Notes under the pieces: model-generated | Told to the model about the DNA's origin: nothing | Databases searched by the model: none | Seen by the model: the letters and a program-made list of their open reading frames with translations, nothing else | DNA from: Oikopleura dioica | Lineage: Eukaryota > Animalia > Chordata | Direction of reading: 5' to 3' | DNA: 64,000 nt | Assembly: GCA_907165135.1 (NCBI GenBank) | Contig: OU015566.1 | Span: 11,966,001-12,030,000 of the forward strand | Shown here: positions 5,914 to 59,952 of the stretch, in pieces | Layout: the number at the start of each line of letters is the position of its first letter | Numbering within the stretch: the first letter of the stretch is position 1 | Program-made: the position numbers and the translations under genes

Positions 5914-7911
5914 AACGCAAAATATCTAAATCAATATTTTTCATTCCCTTTCTTTCGCTCTACATAACCTTTCTGTCGATTCAAATCAGAATGATCATGA
6001 CGTCAATTTATACTTCGAAGTATACTGTGACTGCGATGAATAAACTTGTTGATATATTTAGCTCTATGGACCAAAGAGTATGGTGTTTTTTTTTATCGTA
6101 GATCCAAAATGAACCAACAATGGAAAAAGAGAAGCCATTGATCCTTTTTGAATCCGTGATCTTATTCGAAATCAATTTTGCGAGGCCTTGTTGTCGATTT
6201 ATAAAAATCCAATTTGACGAAACATCCCAAATAACCTATTGGACATTCCACTGCTTGACAATGTCTATTTTTAAGCTCGGCTGGCAACCTGTGTAGAAAA
6301 CCTTAGGCAGGTCCTGCAAGAGCTGTAATAATAATCCGCGCAGCGGCTTTTTCGAAACAAAGCCGCGTAATTCCACAGAATTAAAAATAGATACAGGTGG
6401 TTATTGAAGACCCTTGGCAAGGTTTTCTACACTGGTTCCCAAGCCCAGTTATGTAAACCAGCGTATGCATTTCTGAACCTTTCTCCGAGACAATATTAAA
6501 CGAAGCTAGAACTATTAGACCTGCAATCCTTTGAACCATTTATTTACCTTCTTCCTGATTCCTGCCTAAAAAATAAAATCCTGAAGTTCAAATTAAGACT
6601 AAAGCCTTTCTTTTTGAAACAGAGTTAACGAAAAGAAGGTGATTTATTTTCATTGTCTTGCACAGCAAGTTTTGAAAACGGAAAAATAGTATTTTCCCGA
6701 AAATAAGAGCGGGGAGATCCGAAGTTCTCGGTTAGCTCAGCTGACGAGAGGAAAAAATAAAAAAAAACGAATAAAGCAAGAAGAGTAAAAATAAATTACC
6801 GCACAAAAGTTTTTGAGAATCAAACGAAAGATTGAAGTAAAAAGGGTGCCACCGCGCGGGCAAGAAAGAGAAAATGTTGTTCGCGGGGTGGCAAAAAGTA
6901 GAAGAAGAAAAAAACGAATCTGTTTGTCGAATTTGTTTGGAGAATATCGCTGTATTAAGAATTTTGTAGTGGAATATAGTTTCCGGCGGTAGTCATTATT
7001 TTCTGTCGAGTGGTAGTAGAATAATGAGCGGTTTAGGCTTTCTGGACCCAGGAGGGGACGAACACGGGCGCGTTGACATTGAGCCGGCTCTTGACCGGTG
7101 GCTGACTCGTGCGCATCGAGAGGTTCGTCATTTGATCCATCATCTTAAGCTATCGATTAGTGCCAGTCACAGTCATTCCCGAAATGACCTTTGTTGCTAC
7201 TGTAAATCTTGCGCAGTGACATTCAAAAACATACCAATTTGCGTCTGTTGGACACAAGAGTCCTCCTTGATTTCAAGAAATTAAATCATCTAAGAATATA
7301 TGAACTCAGTTCAAAAGTTCCTTGAGATCTGGGTTTAGGAAACATATGCTTACGAAATGATCAATTTATGTCGGAAGTATACACAGGTCATAATGGTTTG
7401 ATCCAAATTATTCACAGCTGTCTTTCGATATAAATGCGCTGCATGTTGGAAATTGTTATAATCTTTAAGATGATACTTGAATGAAGAAGAAAATTCCATA
7501 TTTTTATTAAAAAATAAGGGATCTTATTTGTAATTTTATTTTAAAACGAATAAACTTCAACTCAAAGCTAGAAAAGTTGTTGTGTATCTATGCGAAAAAT
7601 TCCCGTAGACATTATTCACCCCAGCAAATAGAACAATTTTATAGCGGAATTATCATCTCGACGTCAAGAAAACTCGAGGACTCGCGTCAATATTTACAGT
7701 AGCAACAACAAACACAGGTCATGTGTTGAGATATTCACGCTCTTTCAAGCTACGGTAGCACTTTCAAGAGCTGACGTAATTATGAAAGAACCCAGTCCCC
7801 CTCACAATAATTAATTGGGCAATTTGGCCGTCCAGGGCGACAGGAAAAAAGCACACATAAAAATATTTGAAGTTTCACGTGTGTCACGAACCGTAGAGAT
7901 CAAAAAATTAC

Positions 7912-32859: not shown

Positions 32860-33533
32860 TAGGGCCGACGCGCAAAAAATCAACCCCAAGAAAGCATCAA
32901 CGTAGAGAGCTGAAACTTCGGGACATAATGTAGTTCGACCCAACTAAAAAAATTGCTATTGAAAATTTTTTGGTCTGGTCACGTGGTCACGTGATACAGG
33001 CCTCCGAAAAGCTAAAAAAGCTTGACGACCTTGAACGCCTGATCAAGGTCGATCAGCTCATACCTCTGAAGAAAGAACTCAAAAAGTTATTCTTATAGAG
33101 TAAATAATATTTTTGGTGGCGCAGTCACGTGAGGCCGTAGAAGGGAAAAAGGCCCCAAAAAATGGGTTAAAATATGGTAAAATCAAGCTTTCATGGGTTC
33201 ATTTAGTCAAAATTGGTGTCAAAAACAGCTGTTTTGGACGTTTCAACGAGCTCTTCTGCGTCACGTGATTGCACCACCAAAAATATTATTAGCTCTATCA
33301 GAATAACTTTTTGAGCTCTTTCTTCTGAGGTATAAGCTGATCGACCTTGATCAGGCGTTCAAGGTCGTCAAGCTTTTTTAGCTTTTCGGAGGCCTGTATC
33401 ACGTGACCACGTGACCAGACCAAAAAATTTTCAATAGCAATTTTTTTAGTTGGGTCGAACTACATTATGTCCCGAAGTTTCAGCTCTCTACGTTGATGCT
33501 TTCTTGGGGTTGATTTTTTGCGCGTCGGCCCTA
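32860..33533. mobile_element. Non-autonomous hAT-like TIR element (MITE), 674 bp
   Basis: Near-perfect long inverted repeats starting TAGGGCCGACGCGC; 8-bp direct duplication CATATATT at 32852-32859 and 33534-33541. Confidence 0.88.
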
Positions 33534-33927: not shown

Positions 33928-34572
33928 GATAATTTCAAAAAAATTTTTGCGGGTCTGAAAATCGTAAAAATTCTGAAAGTGCAGTTTTCTTCAGCTTGTT
34001 GAGACGAGTCGAATGGTGGGTCAAACTCTTGATAACTCCAAGGATTGACCGGTTAACCGGCTGGTTACCGGAAAATACGTTTCCGGTCGCCGTTTTTGTT
34101 CTAGATATGCTAGGATGATGAATGAACCCGGAAACTGATCCTTATGGTCAGTTCTACTGTGGGCAAAAAGATATTGGTCAAATATATAGCGAAACTTTTT
34201 TTAACTATAAAAATTCTAAATTTTGTATGTATTTCGTTGTCGCTGCACCTTCCTAATTTTCGGTCCCATTTTCATAAGAAAATAGAATTTTGGTGATAAG
34301 CATCTTATGGTTAGAGATATGATTCTCATTTTTTCACCCACAGAAGAACTAACTTCAAGGACCAGTTTCCCGCTTTTTTTGTCATTCTAGCATTTCTAGA
34401 ACAAAAACGGCGACCGGAAATGTATTTTCCGGGAAATTGCCGGCTAACCGGTTAATCATTGGAGCCATCAAAAGTTTGACCCATCATTCGACTCGTCTCG
34501 ACGAGCTCAAGAAAACTGCACTTTCAGATTTTTTATGATTTCCGGACCCGCAAAATTTTTTTTGAAATTATC
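33928..34572. mobile_element. MITE family C copy 1 (GATAATTTC termini), 645 bp
   Basis: Long imperfect TIRs; 4-bp direct repeat TACT on both flanks; homologous copy at 48392-49012. Confidence 0.85.
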
Positions 34573-45311: not shown

Positions 45312-45677
45312 ATGACTTTTGCTGAATTCGACAGAGTGCACAGGCGATCGTTGCGAACAGTAAACGAGGTTCTCGGAACAAGACTCTTTCATCGAGAAAT
45401 TCCAGCTAGAGAAACTCATTGGGATCCTCCAAGCAGTTATGGAAGCAGGCCTACAAATCATTTGCAGCAGAGAATGAGTTCGTCGCGATTAGATTCTGGG
45501 AGGGACTTCCAATCACCATCGACGACTATGAGTTACGGAGGATATGGTCAGAGACATTATGAAGAAAGATCAGGTTCTTTGCCTAGGTCAAGCATTGGAG
45601 CAAGACGGCCAGAAAATATGGCAACCAGAAGACATCAGTATCACGAGGAACCTGCTTCTCAGTACAGTGATGGATAA
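45312..45677 (+). CDS. Possible intronless 121-aa low-complexity protein
   Basis: Open frame with ATG shortly after a TTCAG acceptor; no recognisable domain. Confidence 0.4.
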   Translation: MTFAEFDRVHRRSLRTVNEVLGTRLFHREIPARETHWDPPSSYGSRPTNHLQQRMSSSRLDSGRDFQSPSTTMSYGGYGQRHYEERSGSLPRSSIGARRPENMATRRHQYHEEPASQYSDG

Positions 45678-45712: not shown

Positions 45713-45739
45713 CGGTTAGGAATACCTCGTGCGCTAAGC
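45713..45739 (+). pseudogene. 3'-terminal 5S rRNA remnant
   Basis: CGGTTAGGAATACCTCGTGCGCTAAGC plus ATTTT matches the 3' end of the intact 5S gene. Confidence 0.8.
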
Positions 45740-45989
45740 ATTTTGATCCTTATTTTATCAGGAAAAGGGTCATCCTTTTTCCGTTTGGAAGGGATTGTAT
45801 AAATGTCTGATGGAATGAGAAAGCTTCTATATCGTTGAATTCAATTGCCTATGCGAAGAAGCTACCAAACGCGGGCCCCAGAGCATCGAGGAGATTTGGC
45901 GCCCTCCGCCGCGCGCTTTTCTGAAAATAGGCCGAAAATAGGAGCGCGCAGCGACAAAACGACCTCGAAATCAAGCACCCTCTCTCTAC

Positions 45990-46085
45990 ACTCATCCCAT
46001 TTTTGAGTCCGATTTCGATTGTCTAACAGGTAGGAATCGTCTCCATGCCCTCTCTCTCCTATCCCTCTCGCCTCTCACAAACAAA
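45990..46085 (+). ncRNA. Spliced-leader (SL) RNA gene copy 1 (exon 45990-46029; 3' end approximate)
   Basis: 40-nt leader identical in all copies and matching the recalled Oikopleura SL; followed by donor GTAGGA; conserved upstream block. Confidence 0.9.
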
Positions 46086-46133
46086 AATCTTCTAATCAAA
46101 GAAACGTTAGCTAGCCTCAAATGGAAGTTTCAT

Positions 46134-46544
46134 TTATTCGGTTTTATTGACAAAACTGACTGGAACGTTAGTGCCGTACTTTCTATCAGCAGTGAATAAA
46201 AGGTTTTTGCCATTGAATTTGGAGGAGAGTGACTCAAAGTCAACCGTTTTTGGTACAGAAAGGGTTCTCTTCCAGTTGTGTGCTGACTCGATCTTCACTC
46301 CTTCGATGATTTCTGATGTTTTTGATGAGCCAGAGATTTGCAGCTCTCTCTTCGACTCGTCCTTGGTGATTTTGAGGTCTTCCTTCTGCGTCGGAAGCGA
46401 CGCGAGATCAATTCTTGCTGACCAGGTTGTAAGAGTGATCATTTCTTGCGAAATGGAGTAGGGCTGGTAGCGACGATCACGGGATTTGCGCTGGATCGGG
46501 CGGTCGAATTCGGGAGAAAAGGGAAATCCGGCGATTTTAATCAT
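46134..46544 (-). CDS. Small heat-shock protein A (alpha-crystallin domain), intronless, 136 aa
   Basis: WSARIDL...DLKIT...LQISG...WKRTLSVPKTVDFESLSSKFNGKNLLFTA; C-terminal VPV (IXI-type) motif; TATAAAA upstream at 46613-46619. Confidence 0.8.
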   Translation of the reverse strand: MIKIAGFPFSPEFDRPIQRKSRDRRYQPYSISQEMITLTTWSARIDLASLPTQKEDLKITKDESKRELQISGSSKTSEIIEGVKIESAHNWKRTLSVPKTVDFESLSSKFNGKNLLFTADRKYGTNVPVSFVNKTE

Positions 46545-46612
46545 CTCTTGCTTTTTTTGTATCTCTTGGAAAGATTTCCCAGTATGAATGTGCTCTTGCT
46601 GAAACAAGCCCA

Positions 46613-46818
46613 TTTTATACTGTTGAAAACTTGGAGAACATTCGGGAAATCAAGTGTAGAAAATTCCAGAATATAACAGAACATTCCAGAACCAATGGAA
46701 CATTCGAGAAGACTGGTATCTTCACTGTAGATTCTTGAGAAAGAAGATTCCAGAACATTCTACACTGGAAAAAGAACCTGCTAGAAGAGACGACGACAGT
46801 CATCAGTGGCTATAAATA
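46613..46818. promoter_or_regulatory. Bidirectional heat-shock promoter: two TATA boxes flanking at least five HSE arrays
   Basis: nGAAnnTTCnnGAAn at 46635-46649, 46658-46672, 46678-46692, 46697-46711, and a four-unit array at 46742-46761; TATA boxes at 46613-46619 (-) and 46811-46818 (+). Confidence 0.88.
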
Positions 46819-46870
46819 CCGAGCGGGAGATGGCTTTCTCATCACACCAGAGATACAAAAACCAACGAAA

Positions 46871-47302
46871 ATGTTTACTTTTTCCAACGAACACTTCGAA
46901 CCGCTAATGAACCAGGTCTTTTCTGAGCTCGCCCATTCCGCCAACAAGCGTGGAGGATGCCGGCAAACTGCTGAGAAATCGAGCAAGTGGTGCAGCTGCA
47001 TCAACCTTTCTACCATCCCCACCAAGGCCGAGGAACTGCACGTGAAGGTAGACGAGAAGAGCCGCACTCTGACCGTGTCTGGACAGTCTGAAACGGAGTC
47101 TACTCGACGAGACGGATTGAAGATCTTTTCAACTCACGTCTGGACGAAAGAAATTCGAATTCCAGAGGATGTGGAGCTGAAGACGATCGCGTCCAAGTTG
47201 CACGAGAATCAGCTCACTTTCGTCGCCGAACGAGTGCAGAACGAAGAAGACAAGCAACAAGAAATTCCGATCGAGATCGTCGATACTCCTGCTCATGACT
47301 GA
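46871..47302 (+). CDS. Small heat-shock protein B (alpha-crystallin domain), intronless, 143 aa
   Basis: AEELHVKVD...LTVSG...WTKEIRIPEDVELKTIASKLHENQLTFVA; C-terminal IPI motif. Confidence 0.85.
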   Translation: MFTFSNEHFEPLMNQVFSELAHSANKRGGCRQTAEKSSKWCSCINLSTIPTKAEELHVKVDEKSRTLTVSGQSETESTRRDGLKIFSTHVWTKEIRIPEDVELKTIASKLHENQLTFVAERVQNEEDKQQEIPIEIVDTPAHD

Positions 47303-47433
47303 GACAGTCGATTTTCGCATATTCCTTTATTACCTGATTTTACGGAAAACACATAGATACAGTATTAACCTGCAATAAACATAATCCTGAGTCAAAAATT
47401 TGCTATATATGCTGGCTAGAACCGACCTCGTTC

Positions 47434-47551
47434 GCTTAGCGTCATACCGCGTAGAATAAACCAGTTCTCGTCCGATCACTGAAGTCAAACTACGACGGGC
47501 GGGGTTAGTACTTACATGGGTGACCGGTTGGGAATACCTCGTGCGCTAAGC
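47434..47551 (+). rRNA. 5S rRNA
   Basis: 118 nt, colinear with eukaryotic 5S (CATACC...TCTCGTCCGATC...GTTAGTACTT...GGGAATACC); terminal stem GCTTAGCG/CGCTAAGC; TTTT terminator. Confidence 0.95.
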
Positions 47552-47656
47552 ATTTTGACTTTTTTGCATAAAACAATCATTCTTTTTCACGACTAAACTT
47601 TCTTGATCCTCAATTATCATTTAATCGAGCTATAAGAAGCTATTGAAAAGATCCTA

Positions 47657-47817
47657 CAGTGGGTTGCGCAGGTACTGCACCCTTTGTGATTGCGGCGTTG
47701 CTGAACCCTTCGCCCGCGCTTTTTCTATTGTTTCTTTCTAGACTTGCTCAAAGTGATTGCGTGACTGGTGCACCCTTTACCCGCTCTTTAGGGGTGCACT
47801 ACCTGCGCAACCCACTG
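47657..47817. mobile_element. Tc1/mariner-type MITE, 161 bp
   Basis: TIR CAGTGGGTTGCGCAGGTA..TGCACCC; TA on both flanks; absent from the outer 5S-SL spacer. Confidence 0.75.
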
Positions 47818-47976
47818 TAATGTTTGCGACTGGGAAGTATTGATAGTTGAGCTTGCGTAGTGGGCTGCGTGGCACTTGTGAAAAAGCGCCCTCTACCGCG
47901 CGCTTTTCTGAAAACAGGTCGAAAATAGGAGCGCGCAGCGACAAAACGACCTCGAAATCAGGCACCCCTTCTCTTT

Positions 47977-48072
47977 ACTCATCCCATTTTTGAGTCCGAT
48001 TTCGATTGTCTAACAGGTAAGAATCGTCTCCATGCCCTATCTCTCCTATCCGTCTCGCCTCTCACAAATAAG
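47977..48072 (+). ncRNA. SL RNA gene copy 2 (exon 47977-48016; 3' end approximate)
   Basis: Exact 40-nt leader plus GTAAGA donor; same upstream block as copy 1. Confidence 0.92.
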
Positions 48073-48112
48073 AAAATTCTTTCGAAGGAGAACCTCAGAA
48101 CGGTTCTCCTTA

Positions 48113-49316
48113 GACGCGCTTTTTCTAAGGTGGGTTATTTCACCGACTTCTTGATTTTTAACCCTGGAACACCATACCTTTTTGGAATCAGCAGAAAATT
48201 TTAAGAACTTTGACCGTTTAAAATTCTAGAAATCTCCACTTCCGGTCGATTCTAGAGCCGGAAGTTGACGAAATATAGGACTTAGGGTGAAGTGTGACCT
48301 ATCAAATTGATGCTTAGAAGATTTCCTATGATTGAAAAGAAGAATTAACCCCGAGCGCGGCCAAGCCAACCGGTCAAAACAGAAAAAAAATGATAATTTC
48401 AAAAAAAATTTTTGCGAGTCTGGAAATCGTAAAAAATCTAAAAGTGCAGTTTTCTTCAGCTCGTTCAGACGAGTCGAATGGTGTGTCAAACTCTTGATAA
48501 CTCCAAGGATTGAAAATACGTTTCCGGTGGCCATTTTCGTTCTAGAAATGCTAAAATGATGATTGAGCCTGAAAACTGATCCTTATGGTTAGTTTTACTT
48601 TGGGCAAAAAGATATCGGTCAAATATGTAATACAACCTTGATTAATGATTAAAATTCTAAATTTTGTATGTATTTTGTTGTTGCTGCGCCTTCCTAATTT
48701 TCGGTCCCATTTTCATGTGAAAATACAATTTTAGTGATAAGCATGTCATGGTAAGAGATATTATTTTCATTTTTTAGCCCACATAAGAACTAACTTTGAG
48801 GATCAGTTTTCGGGTTCAATCGTCATTCTAGAATTTCTAGATCAAAAACGGCGACCGGAAACATATTTTCCGGTAACCAGCCGGTTTACGGGTCAATCCT
48901 TAGAGTTATCAAGAGCTTGACACACCATTCGACTCGTCTCAACGAGCTGAAGAAAACTGCACTTTTAGATTTTTACGATTTCCAGACCCGCAAAAATTTT
49001 TTTGAAATTATCAAATCATCAATTTATGCTTTTTTCAATATTTTACCGGTCGGTTTGACGATGTTTGGGATTTTTTCTTCTGATATACTGATTATAGGAT
49101 GACTCAAAATCTTCTGAGCGTCAATTTGATAGGTCACACTTCACCCTAAGTCCTATATTTCGTCAACTTCCGGCTCTAGAATCGACCGGAAGTGGAGATT
49201 TCTAGAATTTTAAACGGTCAAAGTTCTTAAAATTTTCTGCTGATTCCAAAAGGTATGGTGTTCCAGGGTTAAAAATCAAGAAGTCGGTGAAATAACCCAC
49301 CTTAGAAAAGCGCGTC
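48113..49316. mobile_element. TIR element family B at the palindrome axis (contains nested MITE C)
   Basis: ~200-bp TIRs starting GACGCGCTTTT; after removing 48392-49012 the interior aligns with the element at 49420-50009. Confidence 0.85.
48392..49012. mobile_element. MITE family C copy 2, nested, 621 bp
   Basis: GATAATTTC...GAAATTATC termini; 4-bp direct repeat AAAT on both flanks; homologous to 33928-34572. Confidence 0.85.
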
Positions 49317-49361
49317 TAAGGAGAACCGTTCTGAGGTTCTCCTTCGAAAGAATTTTCTTAT

Positions 49362-50045
49362 TTGTGAGAGGCGAGACGGATAGGAGAGATAGGGCATGGA
49401 GACGATTCTTACCTGTTAGGACGCGCTTTTTATGGTTGTGGAGGTTTTCTAGCCCACTTGCGCCTTATAAACCCTCGAACATTATACCTTTTTGGAATCA
49501 GGAAGAAATTTTAAGAACATTGACCGTTTTAGTTTCCGAAATTTCCACTTCCGGTCCGATTCTAGAGCTGGAAGTTGCCGAAATTTTTGAGTTTGGGCAA
49601 CTTGTGACCTATCAAATTGATGCTCAGAAGATTTCGAGTCATCTCATCTAAAAATCATTAAGAAAAACCATCCCAACCGCGGTCAAACCGACCGGCAAAA
49701 CTTGTAAAAAGGCATAAATTTGTGATTTTTCTTTCCGTTTTTAGCGGTTGATTTGACCGCTGTCGGCATTTATTCTTCTCTCAGATGATAGGAAATCTTC
49801 TGAGCATCAATTTGATAGGTCACAAGTTGCCCAAACTCAAAATTTTCGTCAACTTCCGGCTCTAGAATCGGACCAGAAGTGGAAATTTTAGAAACTAAAA
49901 CGGTCAAAGTTTTTAAAATTTCCTCCTGATTCCAAAAAGGTATAATGTTCAAGGGTTTATAAGGCGCAAGTGGGCTAGAAAACCTCCACAACCTTAAAAA
50001 AAGCGCGTCTAGACAATCGAAATCGGACTCAAAAATGGGATGAGT
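49362..50045 (-). pseudogene. SL RNA gene copy 3, leader exon split by a TIR element
   Basis: 33 nt of leader at 50013-50045, and the last 7 nt plus donor and intron at 49419 downward; separated by the element at 49420-50009. Confidence 0.9.
49420..50009. mobile_element. TIR element family B copy 2, 590 bp
   Basis: GACGCGCTTTT...AAAAGCGCGTC termini; TAG duplicated at 49417-49419 and 50010-50012. Confidence 0.88.
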
Positions 50046-50204
50046 AAAGAGAAGGGGTGCCTGATTTCGAGGTCGTTTTGTCGCTGCGCGCTCCTATTTT
50101 CGACCTGTTTTCAGAAAAGCGCGCGGTAGAGGGCGCTTTTTCACAAGTGCCACGCAGCCCACTACGCAAGCTCAACTATCAATACTTCCCAGTCGCAAAC
50201 ATTA

Positions 50205-50365
50205 CAGTGGGTTGCGCAGGTAGTGCACCCCTAAAGAGCGGGTAAAGGGTGCACCAGTCACGCAATCACTTTGAGCAAGTCTAGAAAGAAACAATAGAAA
50301 AAGCGCGGGCGAAGGGTTCAGCAACGCCGCAATCACAAAGGGTGCAGTACCTGCGCAACCCACTG
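50205..50365. mobile_element. Mirror copy of the Tc1/mariner-type MITE
   Basis: Reverse complement of 47657-47817, TA flanks. Confidence 0.75.
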
Positions 50366-50470
50366 TAGGATCTTTTCAATAGCTTCTTATAGCTCGATTA
50401 AATGATAATTGAGGATCAAGAAAGTTTAGTCGTGAAAAAGAATGATTGTTTTATGCAAAAAAGTCAAAAT

Positions 50471-50588
50471 GCTTAGCGCACGAGGTATTCCCAACCGGTC
50501 ACCCATGTAAGTACTAACCCCGCCCGTCGTAGTTTGACTTCAGTGATCGGACGAGAACTGGTTTATTCTACGCGGTATGACGCTAAGC
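50471..50588 (-). rRNA. 5S rRNA (mirror copy)
   Basis: Reverse complement of 47434-47551. Confidence 0.95.
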
Positions 50589-50719
50589 GAACGAGGCCGG
50601 TTCTAGCCAGCATATATAGCAAATTTTTGACTCAGGATTATGTTTATTGCAGGTTAATACTGTATCTATGTGTTTTCCGTAAAATCAGGTAATAAAGGAA
50701 TATGCGAAAATCGACTGTC

Positions 50720-51151
50720 TCAGTCATGAGCAGGAGTATCGACGATCTCGATCGGAATTTCTTGTTGCTTGTCTTCTTCGTTCTGCACTCGTTCGGCGAC
50801 GAAAGTGAGCTGATTCTCGTGCAACTTGGACGCGATCGTCTTCAGCTCCACATCCTCTGGAATTCGAATTTCTTTCGTCCAGACGTGAGTTGAAAAGATC
50901 TTCAATCCGTCTCGTCGAGTAGACTCCGTTTCAGACTGTCCAGACACGGTCAGAGTGCGGCTCTTCTCGTCTACCTTCACGTGCAGTTCCTCGGCCTTGG
51001 TGGGGATGGTAGAAAGGTTGATGCAGCTGCACCACTTGCTCGATTTCTCAGCAGATTGGCAGCATCCTCCACGCTTGTTGGCGGGATGGGCGAGCTCAGA
51101 AAAGACCTGGTTCATCAGCGGTTCGAAGTGTTCGTTGGAAAAAGCAAACAT
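50720..51151 (-). CDS. Small heat-shock protein B' (mirror paralogue)
   Basis: 143 aa; differs from B at four N-terminal residues (T3A, S23P, R31C, T33S). Confidence 0.85.
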   Translation of the reverse strand: MFAFSNEHFEPLMNQVFSELAHPANKRGGCCQSAEKSSKWCSCINLSTIPTKAEELHVKVDEKSRTLTVSGQSETESTRRDGLKIFSTHVWTKEIRIPEDVELKTIASKLHENQLTFVAERVQNEEDKQQEIPIEIVDTPAHD

Positions 51152-51203
51152 TTTCGTTGGTTTTTGTATCTCTGGTGTGATGAGAAAGACATCTCCCGCT
51201 CGG

Positions 51204-51395
51204 TATTTATAGCCACTGATGACTGTCGTCGTCTCTTCTAGCAGGTTTTATTTCCAAGTTAGAATGTTCTGGAATTTTCTTTCTGAAGATACCAGTTTTC
51301 TCGAATGTTCGATTTGTTCTGGAATGTTCTGTTATATTCTGGAATATTCTACACTTGATTTCCCGAATGTTCTCCAAGTTTTCAACAGTATAAAA
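51204..51395. promoter_or_regulatory. Mirror bidirectional heat-shock promoter
   Basis: TATA boxes at 51204-51211 (-) and 51389-51395 (+); repeated GAA/TTC pentamers such as AGAATGTTCTGGAATTTTCT and TTCTGGAATGTTCT. Confidence 0.85.
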
Positions 51396-51461
51396 TGGGC
51401 TTGTTTCAGCAAGAGCACATTCAAACTGAGAAATCTTTCCAAGAGATACAAAAAGCAAGAG

Positions 51462-51872
51462 ATGATTAAAATCGCCGGATTTCCCTTTTCTCCCGAATTC
51501 GACCGCCCGTTCCAGCGCAAATCCCGTGATCGTCGCTACCAGCCCTACTCCATTTCGCAAGAAATGATCACTCCTACAACCTGGTCAGCAAGAATTGATC
51601 TCGCGTCGCTTCCGACGCAGAAGAAAGACCTCAAAATCACCAAGGACGAGTCGAAGAGAGAGCTGCAAATCTCTGGCTCATCAAAAACATCAGAAATCAT
51701 CGAAGGAGTGAAGATCGAGTCAGCACACAACTGGAAGAGAACCCTTTCTGTGCCAAAAACGGTTGACTTTGAGTCACTCTCCTCCAAATTCAATGGCAAA
51801 AACCTTTTATTTACTGCTGATAGAAAGTACGGCACTAACGTTCCAGTCAGTTTTGTCAATAAAACCGAATAA
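51462..51872 (+). CDS. Small heat-shock protein A' (mirror paralogue)
   Basis: 136 aa; three visible substitutions versus A (I/F, L/P, E/K). Confidence 0.8.
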   Translation: MIKIAGFPFSPEFDRPFQRKSRDRRYQPYSISQEMITPTTWSARIDLASLPTQKKDLKITKDESKRELQISGSSKTSEIIEGVKIESAHNWKRTLSVPKTVDFESLSSKFNGKNLLFTADRKYGTNVPVSFVNKTE

Positions 51873-51919
51873 ATGAAACTTCCATTTGAGGCTAGCTAAC
51901 GTCTCTTTGATGAGAAGAT

Positions 51920-52015
51920 TTTTGTTCGTGAGAGGCGAGAGGGTAGGAGAGAGAGTGCGTGGAGACGATTCTTACCTGTTAGACAATCGAAATCGGACTC
52001 AAAAATGGGATGAGT
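51920..52015 (-). ncRNA. SL RNA gene copy 4 (exon 51976-52015; 3' end approximate)
   Basis: Exact 40-nt leader plus GTAAGA donor on the minus strand. Confidence 0.92.
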
Positions 52016-52239
52016 GAAGAGAGACGGTGCTTGATTTCGAGGTCGTTTTGTCGCTGCGCGCTCCTATTTTCGGCCTTTTTTCAGAAAAGCGCGCGGCGGA
52101 GGGCGCCAAATCTCCTCGATGCTCTGGGGCCCGCGTTTGGTAGCTTCTTCGCATAGGCAATTGAATTCAACGATATAGAAGCTTTCTCATTCCATCAGAC
52201 ATTTATACAATCCCTTCCAAACGGAAAAATGATCAAAAT

Positions 52240-52274
52240 GCTTAGCGCACAAGGTATTCCGAAACGGTCACCCA
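52240..52274 (-). pseudogene. 3'-terminal 5S rRNA remnant (right edge)
   Basis: Reverse complement TGGGTGACCGTTTCGGAATACCTTGTGCGCTAAGC, a diverged 5S 3' end. Confidence 0.8.
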
Positions 52275-52773
52275 GTTTCTCCTTCGTATTCAATAATCTT
52301 AGTCTATTTATCCTCCACAAAGATCTCCTTATCACCCTCGTGCTTCACCTGCTGTTCCTCCGACGCCAATACCAAAGCCTTCCAGATCTTACGATCGAAA
52401 GCGGGAAGACCTCGACTTCTTGAATAAATTCAACGCTCCACTTCGCCAAGAGCCGGTCAAAGGACCGCGCGTCAAAAGATTTCCCACTGGGCTTGACTTT
52501 GATTCTGGACTTCTGATCAAGAAAACGGTTACCTCCGTGTCCACTTGAATAAATAAAAACATGGTCAACTAGACATCATTCGAGGTAACATCCGTAAAAG
52601 CCTTCGTATGGGACATTGACGACGGACTTGAGGAGGGAGATCTCGGAAGAAACGCCGTATCCGTCTAAGAGTACTATGGAGGTTAATTTGAATCGATTAG
52701 GAGCGTGATTTCGGTCAAGTATTTGCTCGAAAGTAAAACAATCAGGAATCAAAATTAGATCGGATCAAGAAAA

Positions 52774-57882: not shown

Positions 57883-59952
57883 ATGCAGCTTCCAGTTAAA
57901 CTTTTGAAAGAAGGCACTGACACCTCCCAGGGTATTCCCCAGATCGTCTCCAACATCAATGCCTGTCAGGTCATCGGTGAGGCGATCAAAACGACTCTTG
58001 GGCCCCGAGGCATGGACAAAATGATCATCGATGCTAGATCAAAGGTAATCAATTATCAGAAGTACTCTTTTCTATTTTCTCCTTCAGACTCACATTTCCA
58101 ACGATGGTGCCACCATCCTCCAGCTCCTCGACATCGTCCACCCTGCAGCAAAGACCCTCGTCGACATCGCCAAGTCACAAGATGCCGAGATCGGCGATGG
58201 AACGACCTCTGTCACTCTCCTTGCCTGTGAATTCATGACGATGATGAAGCGATTCATCGAAGATACCGTGCACCCACAGTTGATCGTCCGCGCCTTGAGA
58301 GAGTCGGTCAACCTGGCCATCAAACGACTTGAAGAAATCGCTGTCAACCCAATGAAGAGTGGTACTCCCGAGGACAGACGATCAACCTTGATCAAGTGCG
58401 CCCAGACAGCTATGAGCTCAAAGGTATTGTATTTTTAATTTAACAGGGATCACCTGAATATTTTAGCTCGTCGCTGCCAACAAAGAGTTCTTCTCCGAAA
58501 TGGTCGTTTCTGCTGTCCAGTCCATTGATCAGGATATCATGCCGCTAGAGATGATCGGTATCAAGAAGGTCCCCGGTGGTGCTTTGGAGGATTCGCGACT
58601 TATCAACGGTGTTGCCTTCAAAAAGACTTTCAGGTAAAACTCTTGAAAATTGGCCCATTCAGCAAGGGACTTTCAGCTACGCTGGATTTGAAATGCAGAA
58701 GAAAGAGTACCAAAACCCACTGATCGCCCTCCTGAACGTCGAACTCGAACTCAAGGCGGAGAAAGAGAACGCGGAGGTGCGCGTTACAAACGTCAAGGAC
58801 TACCAGGATGTCGTTGATGCCGAGTGGGACATCCTCTACGAAAAGCTCGAGTGCTGCTACAAATCTGGCGCCAAGGTCGTCCTCTCCAAGCTTCCCATTG
58901 GCGACGTTGCTACACAGTATTTCGCTGACCGAGGAATGTTCTGCGCCGGTCGAGTAGCTGACGAAGATCTCAAGAGAACTATGAAGGCTTGCGGTGGTGC
59001 CATTGTGGTAATTTTCTGAATTAGTGATTTTGGTTTTCAAATGTTTTTAGTCATCATGTTTGAATCTGAGCGAAAATCAGCTTGGAACATGCAGCACGTT
59101 CACTGAGACCCAGGTCGGCAGCGAGCGATTCAACTTCTTTGAGGGCTGCCCCAACGCCAAGACTTGCACCATGCTCCTCCGAGGTGGCGCCGAGCAGTTT
59201 TTGGAAGAAACAGAGCGATCCCTTCACGACGCGATTATGATTGTTCGACGAGCGAGCAAGTCTGATAGCGTAAGTTTTCTTCATCCCGCCAAGCCTTTAA
59301 CAAAATCTTAGATCGTTGCTGGAGGTGGAGCTATTGAAATGGAGCTCTCCAGAACTCTCAGAGAACATTCCCGAACCATCAAAGGAAAAGGACAGATGTT
59401 AGTGAATGCATACGCAAAGGCTCTCGAGGTAAGAAAAAAACGATAAGTTGGGGTCGACGTACACATTCATTATTTAGATCATCCCACAGCAGCTGTGCGA
59501 TAATGCCGGTTTCGATTCTACTGATCTTCTTAATAAGCTTCGTAAAGGCACTTTGGTTTTAAAAGCAATCAATTTTACTCAAAGATTCTTTGAAGGACTG
59601 TTTTTAAAACCTGATAAAAGCGCATGCTGATGGTCAAATCTGGGCTGGTGTTGACGTAAATGAAGAGGGCATTTCCAACAACTACGAAAAGTTCGTTTGG
59701 GAGCCAGCTCTTGTCAAAAAGAACGCTTTAATGGTAAGCCAATTTTAAGGATGAAGTGGGAAGGATGGAGTCTATTCTAATTTGATTTCGCTTTTGATCC
59801 GCTTTCTAAATCCGCCCTCGTTTAATTATATCTTATTTCACAAGGGGAGGAGTCGATTCTTTATTAATTTATTCTTTAAGGCTGCCACAGAAGCTGCATG
59901 CGCCGTCCTCTCCGTAGACTGGACCATCAAAGTGCCAAAAGCCACTCAATAA
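57883..59952 (+). CDS. CCT7: T-complex protein 1 subunit eta
   Basis: [22 protein letters not shown]; TLGPRGMDK; [10 protein letters not shown]; [11 protein letters not shown]; RYNFF-like [10 protein letters not shown]; [11 protein letters not shown]. Confidence 0.96.

Follow-up and report, generated by a model that had tools for sequence, protein, structure and literature searches.

In Oikopleura dioica, the 5S rRNA and spliced-leader (SL) RNA genes "form inverted repeats": the assembly paper counts 27 copies, 22 of them inverted, and cites Ganot et al. 2004, which predates long-read assembly, for more than 40 copies of 5S-SL inverted repeats (PMC8008620). Palindromic pairs of small heat-shock protein (sHSP) genes are classic in C. 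elegans (Russnak and Candido 1985, as cited in PMC3966223), whose hsp-16 inverted repeat is comparable to the co-duplicated, gene-converted sHSP module proposed here. We analysed a 64-kb stretch (the window) of chromosome OU015566.1 of the Okinawan O. dioica genome OKI2018_I69, in which a sequence-only reading had described a palindrome joining these gene classes. That reading took 5S-SL linkage in Oikopleura as known, which is right but understated, since the inverted repeats are a published hallmark of O. dioica (PMC8008620). The 5S/SL inverted repeat is therefore already known; no paper describing an embedded sHSP pair with its heat-shock promoter was found in the literature searched. Our main reading, to which we give a probability of about 0.7, is that the locus genuinely belongs to the dispersed O. 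dioica 5S-SL inverted repeats, built by co-duplication of a compact module and arm-to-arm conversion.

Gene content of the palindrome

The 6.5-kb mirror-image repeat was confirmed as real and lies where it had been placed before (Table 1). Self-comparison of the window showed 97.8% complementarity over 2242 nt between arms 45772-48012 and 50010-52233, beyond which the symmetry extends at lower identity to the outer 5S remnants; these two remnants pair at 88%. Arm alignment and gene calls bore out the mirror arms, the order of genes and the transposon-filled centre of the sequence-only reading, as well as the coexistence in one locus of Pol II (HSE/TATA), Pol III (5S) and snRNA-type (SL) genes.

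Table 1. Features of the palindrome, in window coordinates
Feature	Position	Strand	Description
Arms, full extent	45713-48112 and 49317-52274		Order per arm, outer to inner: 5S remnant > SL > (sHSP-A < HSE promoter > sHSP-B) > 5S > SL
Left outer 5S remnant	45713-45754	+	5S 3' end (~positions 92-119) and T-run; 97% identical to 47525-47558
Left outer SL unit	45899-46093	+	Exon 45990-46029, GT donor, upstream element ~-46 to -19, conserved intron to ~+104
sHSP-A	46134-46544	-	136 aa, divergent alpha-crystallin-domain protein; annotated in OKI2018_I69; identical to catalogue protein P0075
Left bidirectional A/B promoter	46545-46870		HSE cluster 46636-46760; TATA 46614-46619 (A), 46811-46816 (B)
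sHSP-B	46871-47302	+	143 aa, HSP20/alpha-crystallin family (Pfam HSP20), C-terminal IPI motif
Left 5S rRNA gene	47434-47552	+	Rfam RF00001, 97 bits; starts 131 bp past sHSP-B stop codon
Small MITE	47657-47817		161 bp, CAGTGGG... termini, TA target duplication; in 5S-SL spacer, both arms
Left inner SL unit and downstream, up to central MITE	47886-48112	+	Exon 47977-48016; 100% complementary to split mirror copy
Palindrome centre, family-1 MITE	48113-49316		Termini GACGCGCTTTTT; 80-85% identical to MITE 49420-50009
Family-2 foldback element	48392-49012		Nested in central MITE; direct 4-bp AAAT target duplication
Right inner SL, 3' piece	49317-49419	-	Last exon bases, GT donor, intron part, downstream; 100% complementary to 48010-48123
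Family-1 MITE in right inner SL exon	49420-50009		590 bp, ~5 nt before splice donor; this arm only
Right inner SL, 5' piece	50010-50136	-	Upstream element and first 36 nt of exon; 99% complementary to left arm
Right 5S rRNA gene	50470-50588	-	Rfam RF00001, 97 bits
sHSP-B'	50720-51151	-	143 aa; 4 amino-acid differences from B, all within first 33 residues
Right bidirectional HSE promoter	51152-51461		HSEs 51262-51372; 14-bp and 2-bp indels relative to left arm
sHSP-A'	51462-51872	+	136 aa; OKI-annotated (L017 gene 4673-5083); 3 amino-acid differences from A
Right outer SL unit	51912-52106	-	Exon 51976-52015; exact SL+GT match
Right outer 5S remnant	52225-52274	-	5S 3' end from ~position 84; 90% identical to 47517-47565

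sHSP-B scored above the Pfam HSP20 threshold (36.6 bits; cut-off 20.8) and had 74 homologs, named O. dioica SHSP proteins among them; no gene on record has this product, and sHSP-B is not called in the OKI annotation. Its AATAAA lies at 47374. sHSP-A reached only 14.5 bits in Pfam HSP20; it is paralogous to sHSP-B (37% identity, E 2e-18), and its AF2 model (core pLDDT 73-88) matched alpha-crystallin domain (ACD) structures with an E value of 5.7e-6. The ORF lengths of 159 and 217 aa given earlier for sHSP-A are too long: the protein has 136 aa, as in the OKI annotation, because a 2-bp indel distinguishes the two arms upstream of Met24 and the first ATG overlaps with a TATA box. Purifying selection was shown to act on both genes, with all sHSP ORFs intact and dN/dS values of 0.2-0.3 for sHSP-A compared with its paralogs and 0.05-0.3 for sHSP-B.

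The window has 15 perfect trimeric HSEs, against an expectation of about 2.6; twelve of them lie between sHSP-A and sHSP-B in one arm or the other, six in the left arm alone. sHSP-A and sHSP-B are intronless, functional genes and are predicted to be transcribed divergently from one promoter with five or six HSF-type HSEs and two TATA boxes, an arrangement that suggests heat inducibility of the pair. Since the N-terminal extensions of catalogue proteins P0001 and P0082 are translated genomic 5'UTR and not translated SL, sHSP transcription appears to start at its own TATA-directed sites and not with the SL.

The RF00001 gathering score is 38, and the left 5S gene is 100% identical to the 5S at every locus fetched. 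An element (TTGNTATATA) located at about -30 of 5S is kept across clades; 5S would have a Pol III promoter of its own, including a conserved TATA-like element upstream. Searching for the 40-nt O. dioica SL as printed in PMC6883708, followed by GT, gave three exact matches, at 45990 (+), 47977 (+) and 51974 (-), and none in shuffled sequence. The order of SL genes in four arm positions was read correctly, but the 590-bp MITE interrupts the right inner copy inside its exon, so that intact copies are three, not four. The left outer unit is 92% identical to the inner unit and is substituted at one almost invariant position of the intron, while the right outer unit carries a 1-nt deletion and two substitutions at conserved positions, the conserved block being defined from a 14-copy alignment. 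The upstream SL block is conserved across clades, and this snRNA-type element would drive each SL gene on its own.

Recurrence of the sHSP-5S/SL linkage

The module SL > (sHSP-A < HSE > sHSP-B) > 5S > SL would have been copied in one piece to three loci of the OKI2018_I69 genome, where it occurs four times: in the window palindrome, at L015 (U6>5S>SL>[same MITE family]<SL<5S<B[HSE]A><SL<5S<U6) and at L016 (<SL<5S<B[HSE]A><SL remnant). Adjacent sHSP and 5S/SL genes were also present in Bergen (assembly OdB3, L002) and on contigs from marine metagenomes (L003, L004, L006-L010 and L018), so the linkage is not unique to one assembly. L004 keeps SL>(A<HSE>B)>5S with 86% identity over 1.6 kb, L006-L010 contain B>5S and L018 A>5S; L002, L003 and L015 have Nudix/UNC-93 neighbours in common.

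Both partners also exist apart. Among the fetched loci, L015, L002 and L006 contain at least three 5S genes without an adjoining sHSP, the same being probably true of most of the 27 published 5S-SL copies, and the sHSP pairs of L001, L005 and L014 lie beside tRNA-Val, with neither 5S nor SL in the fetched flanks. A further sHSP subfamily has tRNA-Val ~90 bp downstream. Junctions between sHSP and small-RNA genes are of at least four types: B followed after 131 bp by 5S, A followed after 178 bp by 5S (L018), A convergent with SL, and a chimeric sHSP>SL (L002).

Symmetry and origin of the arms

The second arm could be an artefact, produced by a chimeric read folded back on itself or by head-to-head joining of two haplotypes: long-read assembly is known to fail at palindromes, and the 2.6% divergence of the outer arms falls within the heterozygosity range of O. 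dioica. Such an artefact is very unlikely, because the arms differ by 34 substitutions, by indels of 26, 14, 2 and 1 bp and by the one-arm 590-bp MITE, and unrelated unique sequence lies beyond each of them (45 kb on one side, 12 kb on the other). In addition, the L015 palindrome has the same gene set built differently, the short-read metagenome contig L006 has inverted 5S/SL copies adjoining sHSP, and inverted copies prevail in the assembly paper (22 of 27), whose citation of Ganot et al. 2004 concerns repeats described before long reads (PMC8008620).

Mismatches between the arms are unevenly distributed, with 31 in the outer 1.2 kb (45772-46967, 2.6%) versus one in the inner 1.34 kb (46968-48310); with the boundary placed where the sHSP-B coding sequence ends, the identity gradient has a Fisher P of 3.7e-5. 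This pattern fits the earlier description of the arms as self-homogenising. Selection alone is insufficient to explain it, since the near-identical tract covers neutral spacers and a MITE. Intrachromosomal gene conversion would be the process that keeps the arms alike, its last tract reaching from the centre out to about codon 33 of sHSP-B, and the second MITE would subsequently have inserted in one inner SL exon, killing that copy.

The transposon content of the centre was recognised correctly; more exactly, it is one MITE holding one nested foldback element. Each of the two is internally symmetric, so the palindromy runs on, with decaying identity, to ~48690. A second copy, located at window 33928-34572, is 83% identical to the core of the central element. 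The MITE at 49420-50009, which forms a 593-nt gap in the arm alignment, has 234-nt terminal inverted repeats (91% complementary) and a direct TAG (or TA) target duplication, and matches the L015 MITE at 92% identity. The 161-bp MITE has 28-nt terminal inverted repeats (47655-47682 / 47792-47819) and its mirror copy at ~50205-50365.

According to our main reading, the module at the window locus would have been duplicated in inverted orientation around the foldback MITE. The flanks of the central MITE are mirrored (TTA / element / TAA) rather than direct, which suggests that palindrome formation may instead have been MITE-driven and not a simple inverted duplication, inverted copying of one flank having been primed by breakage or fork stalling at the hairpin. 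The same MITE family lies on the axis of two palindromes (window and L015), at differing distances from SL, and mirror-image triplets flank both axis copies (TTA/TAA and TTT/AAA), in contrast with the direct duplications of the off-axis copy (TAG) and of the nested family-2 element (AAAT). Also, the inverted repeats of the axis MITE are 99-100% complementary over the outer 210 nt, versus 91% in the sister copy. However, insertion into a TTAA palindrome centre with a 2-bp duplication of the TA target accounts equally well for the window copy, mirrored flanks could also come from arm-to-arm gene conversion, the comparison involves three copies only, and the Bergen SL-SL spacer (L002) is devoid of such a MITE. 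We hold this origin to be possible but less likely than not.

Linkage and regulation

The sequence-only reading proposed a stress/translation module, in which chaperone output may be coupled to SL and 5S supply. Heat activation of the sHSP promoter could affect 5S and SL output via shared chromatin opening, or via Pol II read-through that passes from sHSP-B into the co-oriented 5S and SL genes. sHSP-B, 5S and SL share orientation with gaps of just 131 and 333 bp, the B-to-5S spacing of ~131 bp is retained in two clades with saturated synonymous sites, and in O. dioica the SL serves as a TOP-like motif in growth control (PMC6883708), which makes a link to stress conceivable. Nevertheless, the sequence gave no evidence of such coupling: each gene retains its own conserved promoter, HSEs are restricted to the stretch between A and B, and the B-5S spacer is unconserved in sequence except for the 5S upstream element. 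Unlinked copies exist, both as sHSP pairs (L001, L005, L014) and as 5S genes, of which six full ones were located in sHSP-bearing loci of the genome versus the 27 copies reported, and a MITE has destroyed one SL copy of the cassette itself. Moreover, genes for growth and genes for stress normally respond in opposite directions. Altogether, we judge such coupling very unlikely.

Alternatively, the small-RNA genes could be kept as boundaries or roadblocks. In an ultra-compact genome, their stably bound Pol III or snRNA-type complexes would hold back the burst of heat-shock transcription and its read-through, by analogy with the insulators found beside heat-shock loci of other animals. In yeast and mammals, Pol III genes are known to act as insulators and roadblocks. 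With the exception of one group, all informative sHSP 3' ends have a small-RNA gene (5S, SL or tRNA-Val) within ~40-250 bp, the junctions are of several distinct types, and L005 and L010 share 700 bp (94.7%) before diverging, one to tRNA-Val and the other to 5S-SL. Against this, the sHSP genes of L012 and L013 have no small-RNA gene in 7.8 kb downstream, rearrangement inside one ancestral cluster may yield all junctions, and proximity by chance is common in a compact genome. A boundary role is thus unlikely, if somewhat less so than coupling.

Long-standing physical adjacency and co-duplication, rather than shared regulation, offer the best explanation of the sHSP-5S/SL linkage, which would be neutral. 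Between the Okinawa and Osaka genomes, breakpoint regions occur roughly once per 7 kb (PMC11067885), so that survival of a 2-kb module requires no selection. Counting against this explanation, the several junction types exceed what inheritance of a single junction would give and hint at a recurrent cause. Under adjacency and co-duplication, the main functional effect of the palindrome would be on copy number, providing O. dioica with four heat-inducible sHSP, two 5S and three SL genes.

Structure and probable homogenisation of the palindrome

Self-comparison of the 43-55 kb region resolved the cassette as an inverted repeat whose arms (45772-48012 and 50010-52233) are 97.8% identical over 2242 nt. 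Weaker symmetry extends outward up to 5S fragments at 45713-45754 and 52225-52274; on the inner side the two halves match at 99-100% (48010-48324 versus 49107-49419), then at 96% and then at 81%, up to an axis near 48690. Past the 5S remnants (beyond 45712 and 52275) the alignment is gap-ridden, with 78% identity over 46 aligned columns, and BLAST returned no match. Mirror arms, gene order and a centre filled with transposable elements are essentially as the sequence-only reading had them, and the positions of the features are collected in the table. Two unannotated ORFs, at 45312-45677 (+) and about 52305-52700 (-), point at the palindrome and end 25-36 bp short of the 5S remnants; neither matched Pfam, and no resemblance between the two could be detected. 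At window 57883-59019, about 5.6 kb to the right of the cassette, lie exons of a gene for a TCP-1/CCT chaperonin subunit, read from ORF translations alone; the nearness is probably a coincidence.

Each inner unit carries 5S and SL on one strand, 5S(+) at 47434 followed by SL(+) at 47977, with SL(-) and 5S(-) at 50470 in mirror image. The SL of the cassette is identical to the 40-nt O. dioica SL sequence as printed in PMC6883708. Since Rfam holds no model that detects it (no SL RNA family was found, even at E <= 5), the SL genes were defined by the published 40-mer together with a 14-copy alignment. Of the four SL genes expected from the first inspection, three proved intact and the right inner one is broken by a 590-bp MITE.

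Coordinates of features in the window and, where a locus is named, at related loci
Feature	Position	Strand	Remarks
Full-length 5S rRNA genes	47434-47552, 50470-50588	+, -	Rfam RF00001, 97 bits each (gathering score 38)
SL 40-mer followed by GT donor	45990, 47977, 51974	+, +, -	exact matches; 0 in shuffled sequence
Right inner SL gene, split	50010-50045 (first 36 nt), 49403-49419 (rest)	-	590-bp MITE between the pieces
sHSP-A, 136 aa	46134-46544	-	matches OKI annotation call
sHSP-B, 143 aa	46871-47302, 50720-51151	+, -	Pfam HSP20 PF00011, 36.6 bits (cut-off 20.8)
Uncalled sHSP-B copies at sister loci	L015 9237-9668; L016 9270-9701
TATAAA boxes facing each sHSP gene	46614-46619, 46811-46816
Family-1 MITE, centre	48113-49316		80-85% related to SL-exon MITE
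Family-1 MITE in right inner SL exon, 590 bp	49420-50009		234-nt terminal inverted repeats; direct TAG (or TA) target duplication
Family-1 MITE copy at L015	8045-8617
Family-2 foldback element nested in centre	48392-49012		direct AAAT duplication
Second family-2 copy	33928-34572		TACT duplication; 245-nt arms, 85% complementarity
Further foldback element	33000-33393		142-nt arms, 92% complementarity
Small TA-flanked MITE	47657-47817		inside identical inner tract
tRNA-Val(AAC), convergent with sHSP-B-type gene	L001 10497-10569; L005 756-828; L014 341-413
U6 snRNA genes, ~160-700 bp from 5S	L015 7295-7401, 11103-11209; L002 4247-4353; L003 2682-2788

The 34 substitutions that separate the arms are unevenly spread: 31 fall in 45772-46967, a single one (47425) in 46968-48310, and the remaining two at 48311 and 48315. 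With the boundary pre-set at the sHSP-B coding end, the contrast is 31/1513 versus 1/811 (Fisher P = 3.7e-5), a distribution that fits the proposal of self-homogenising arms. Besides neutral spacers, the near-identical tract takes in the small MITE (47657-47817) and the central element's outer part, and this rules out selection on 5S and SL as its cause. We infer a gene-conversion or repair tract that would have run from the centre and ended inside sHSP-B; such an end would explain why all four amino-acid differences between the left and right copies (B/B′) lie within the first 33 residues. Because the 590-bp MITE sits in the identical tract of one arm only, it inserted after the arms were last homogenised. 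These private variants, together with a MITE private to one arm, the unique flanks, a differently built sister palindrome at another locus of the same genome (L015) and independent literature on inverted 5S-SL repeats, make it unlikely that the cassette is an artefact of assembly.

Terminal inverted repeats, a target-site duplication, several diverged copies and the lack of coding capacity identify the elements as MITEs, and the ORF in the centre had no Pfam match. Family-1 MITEs lie on the axes of both the window and L015 palindromes, at different distances from the SL gene, and at both sites the flanks are mirror images (TTA / TAA in the window, TTT / AAA in L015). Such flanks on two axes would fit a foldback element that itself primed the inverted duplication. 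This origin is possible but tentative: a TA-duplicating element entering the exact TTAA centre of an existing perfect palindrome is an alternative, and only three copies of the family were compared. All three, seen across some 100 kb of the OKI assembly, are inside an SL RNA gene or at most 140 nt from one, and the family may have a regional target preference near SL genes, judged from three copies only. Transposons that land in small-RNA genes include the SL-gene-specific retrotransposons of trypanosomatids and nematodes, and the Dada DNA transposons. Family-1 MITEs resemble these in the location of all three copies inside or near an SL gene, and differ from them in having neither a shared target sequence nor a known autonomous partner, and in their 2-3-bp target duplication.

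The small heat-shock genes and their promoter

A profile search of the PDB matched sHSP-B to HSPB8 and Hsp16. For sHSP-A the profile scores were weaker (Pfam HSP20 14.5 bits, under the cut-off of 20.8; PDB profile E 0.032), and over the domain the protein is 37% identical to sHSP-B (E 2e-18). An AlphaFold (AF2) model of sHSP-A built from nine homologs has a core of residues 31-121 at pLDDT 73-88. A Foldseek search with this model returned sHSP/crystallin ACDs for all of the top 44 PDB matches (E <= 1e-3; TM-scores (target) up to 0.78), the best being 4ydz (E 5.7e-6), with C. elegans SIP-1 and human alphaB-crystallin among the fold matches. Structure prediction and fold search together settled the weak sequence case, giving sHSP-A a predicted alpha-crystallin beta-sandwich fold. 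The C-terminal I/V-x-I/V motif of small heat-shock proteins is an anchoring motif, and the translations carry it in the form I/V-P-I/V, as IPI in sHSP-B and VPV in sHSP-A. A longer sHSP-A ORF was rejected, given that its start falls inside the TATA box and that a 2-bp indel upstream of Met24 distinguishes the two arms.

All ORFs are intact, and dN/dS amounts to 0.2-0.3 between paralogous copies and 0.05-0.1 between clades; on these grounds both sHSP-A and sHSP-B are predicted to be functional genes. The sHSP-A product is identical to an annotated protein of OU015566.1 in the Okinawa assembly OKI2018_I69 (GCA_907165135.1), at about 12.00-12.02 Mb. An exact-protein look-up of sHSP-B gave no entry because the gene is unannotated: in the fetched stretches of all three loci (the cassette, L015 and L016, the latter two being other loci of the same genome) the OKI2018_I69 annotation calls sHSP-A, without a Pfam or domain label, and has no call for sHSP-B. 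The calls in these stretches thus miss an HSP20 gene that is conserved and subject to purifying selection. Three related proteins, P0039, P0045 and P0054 (L002, in the Bergen assembly, 6754-7215; L003, a metagenome contig, 468-929), join an sHSP-A-like N-terminus (MKITGFPFS...) to an sHSP-B-like alpha-crystallin domain, a chimeric make-up that points to recombination of the two paralogs or to conversion of one by the other.

Perfect three-unit HSEs (alternating nGAAn units) number 15 in the 64-kb window against 2.6 expected, and 12 of them fall between A and B, six in the 326-bp intergenic region of each arm. Nine of 11 homologous loci likewise carry HSEs, and sHSP-A and sHSP-B are probably heat-induced. 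In the 'merc' homologs, the N-terminus is a translation not of the SL but of genomic 5′ leader some 30 nt past the TATA boxes; provided that their source is transcript-derived, as we take this marine catalogue to be, transcription of the sHSP genes begins at sites of their own. A scan for bacterial-type promoters and terminators, irrelevant to a eukaryote, gave nothing above shuffles. At the metagenome contig L006, two inverted arrays of eight 15-bp repeats with TTGCGCAAT (394-765) lie upstream of an sHSP-B homolog without HSEs. The motif resembles a C/EBP-type bZIP site, and the arrays may represent a promoter swap.

Recurrence of the linkage

Two further 5S-SL loci were found dispersed in the same genome, both on OU015568.1. 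The first, L015, reads U6>5S>SL>[MITE, family of centre]<SL<5S<B[HSE]A><SL<5S<U6, a palindrome of which one arm alone carries the sHSP pair; the second, L016, reads <SL<5S<B[HSE]A><SL remnant and has no second arm. All sHSP-A-type genes found in the OKI proteome (4/4) lie inside such modules. In the Bergen assembly, L002 carries Nudix, UNC-93, U6>5S>SL><SL and then HSE-sHSP>SL>, its flanking genes being common to L015, and the L003 contig shows the same arrangement. The presence of U6 beside 5S at this Nudix/UNC-93-flanked locus, kept between Okinawa and Bergen, makes it a U6-5S-SL-sHSP cluster. The Bergen scaffold FN653740.1 also holds a 100% identical 612-nt inverted repeat with SL genes (L002 5477-6088 and 7228-7840), which brackets the sHSP gene and reaches the scaffold end, and is either real or an edge effect of assembly.

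Among the other metagenome contigs, L004 has SL>(A<HSE>B)>5S and is 86% identical over 1.6 kb; orthology at its left boundary was rejected, as homology extends no more than about 70 bp beyond the SL unit on its upstream side, where another foldback element follows. L006-L010 carry B>5S, the gap often being 131 bp as in the window, and the more divergent L018 has <B[HSE]A> with a co-oriented 5S gene 178 bp on. The recurrence of the module at L015 and L016, and of the adjacency in Bergen and metagenome contigs, contradicts the possibility that the linkage is unique to this assembly.

Counter-examples were also found. At L001, L005 and L014 the sHSP pair is followed about 90 bp downstream by tRNA-Val(AAC), with no 5S or SL gene in the fetched flanks, and at L012 and L013 no small-RNA gene occurs in the 7.8 kb downstream of the sHSP gene. 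L005 and L010 have 700 bp in common at 94.7% and then split into tRNA-Val and 5S-SL, respectively, which indicates that the sHSP segment has been exchanged between differently flanked loci. The metagenome scan returned five loci, too few for a statistical census.

Related systems, origin and significance

Genes for snRNAs are among the linkage partners of 5S rRNA genes, as is SL1 in nematodes. The relevant passage of PMC10946416 (citing Drouin and de Sa 1995) names as partners the remaining rRNA genes, histone genes and the trans-spliced leader, and has 5S genes sitting in repeat units of other gene families, with which they undergo concerted evolution, as in the cassette; unlike the partners named there, the cassette has a stress-inducible chaperone pair, and its loci are dispersed palindromes rather than long tandem arrays. 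The closest relatives are the inverted 5S-SL repeats of O. dioica itself (Ganot et al. 2004, as cited in PMC8008620; Bliznina et al. 2021), which come from the same species and assembly, and which bear out the earlier statement that 5S-SL linkage is known in Oikopleura. As they appear in the passage on these repeats in PMC8008620, they likewise carry 5S and SL on one strand per unit, with the units inverted and dispersed over chromosomes. That passage gives 27 copies for OKI2018_I69, 22 of them in inverted arrangement, so that the palindromic 5S-SL arrangement is an already known feature. It describes 5S and SL alone, and our loci are set apart from it by the divergent HSE-driven sHSP pair of the cassette and of two other loci, by the U6 genes at L015 and L002 and by the nested MITEs of the cassette centre. 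The sequence-only reading knew of no description of sHSP genes inside SL/5S repeats, and a search of the accessible literature likewise gave nothing relevant for O. dioica, although the clones of the 2004 study may show sHSP ORFs. The class of locus is therefore known and the observation is real, while the embedded sHSP pair and its recurrence appear to be undescribed.

In its organisation the cassette also resembles the C. elegans hsp16-1/hsp16-48 locus, a 1.9-kb head-to-head module in an inverted repeat whose identity is kept by gene conversion (PMC3966223, citing Russnak and Candido 1985). Both have a head-to-head sHSP pair with a shared heat-shock promoter, a module of about 2 kb present as an inverted repeat, and near-identical arms beside diverged flanks, ascribed to gene conversion. 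Only the cassette has 5S and SL RNA genes in its arms; its spacer consists of 1.2-2 kb of transposon sequence as compared with 416 bp of unique sequence in C. elegans, and its arms are 97.8% identical overall (with a near-identical inner tract) as compared with 100%. The resemblance is organisational only and does not imply common descent, the chordate locus having probably arisen independently.

We favour, at a probability of roughly 70%, a structural and evolutionary account. A compact multigene module would have formed from an old adjacency, been copied as a unit and been inverted around a MITE, its homogeneity then being kept by conversion; duplication and inversion of the module would have yielded the four sHSP genes of the locus, predicted to be heat-inducible. 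The idea that the cassette couples chaperone output to 5S and SL supply, put forward at first, is unsupported. The SL upstream block and the 5S upstream element are conserved, and 5S, SL and sHSP genes each have a separate promoter; in the B-5S spacer, only a TATA-like element upstream of 5S is conserved between clades. Moreover, the three sHSP-bearing loci hold six full 5S genes, compared with the 27 copies that the passage in PMC8008620 reports for the assembly, some sHSP pairs have no 5S or SL, and one SL copy of the cassette is broken.

Conservation across lineages was also rejected as evidence of selection. Between the Okinawa and Osaka genomes there are 8821 breakpoint regions, which is a density of about one per 7 kb (PMC11067885); a 2-kb block usually survives at that density, and conservation of the linkage is for this reason weak evidence for selection. 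It is improbable, in our estimate, that the position of sHSP genes beside 5S, SL, U6 and tRNA-Val was selected or mechanistically driven, with small-RNA genes acting as boundary or roadblock elements and foldback MITEs seeding amplifying palindromes. What keeps this idea alive at low probability is the unexplained variety of the juxtapositions, which comprise at least four junction types across lineages about 25 million years apart with extreme genome scrambling.

On the structural account, the cassette offers an example of palindrome dynamics in which diverged outer arms flank a putatively converted inner tract ending in coding sequence, and a younger MITE has inactivated one SL gene. Some of the 5S-SL inverted repeats of O. 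dioica are multigene modules with stress genes and, in places, U6, so that a chaperone family, too, has its sequence and number of copies shaped as the repeat evolves in concert. If the adjacency were selected, these loci might, speculatively, make it practicable to study how Pol III genes organise a stress locus of Pol II in a chordate whose genome is very compact.
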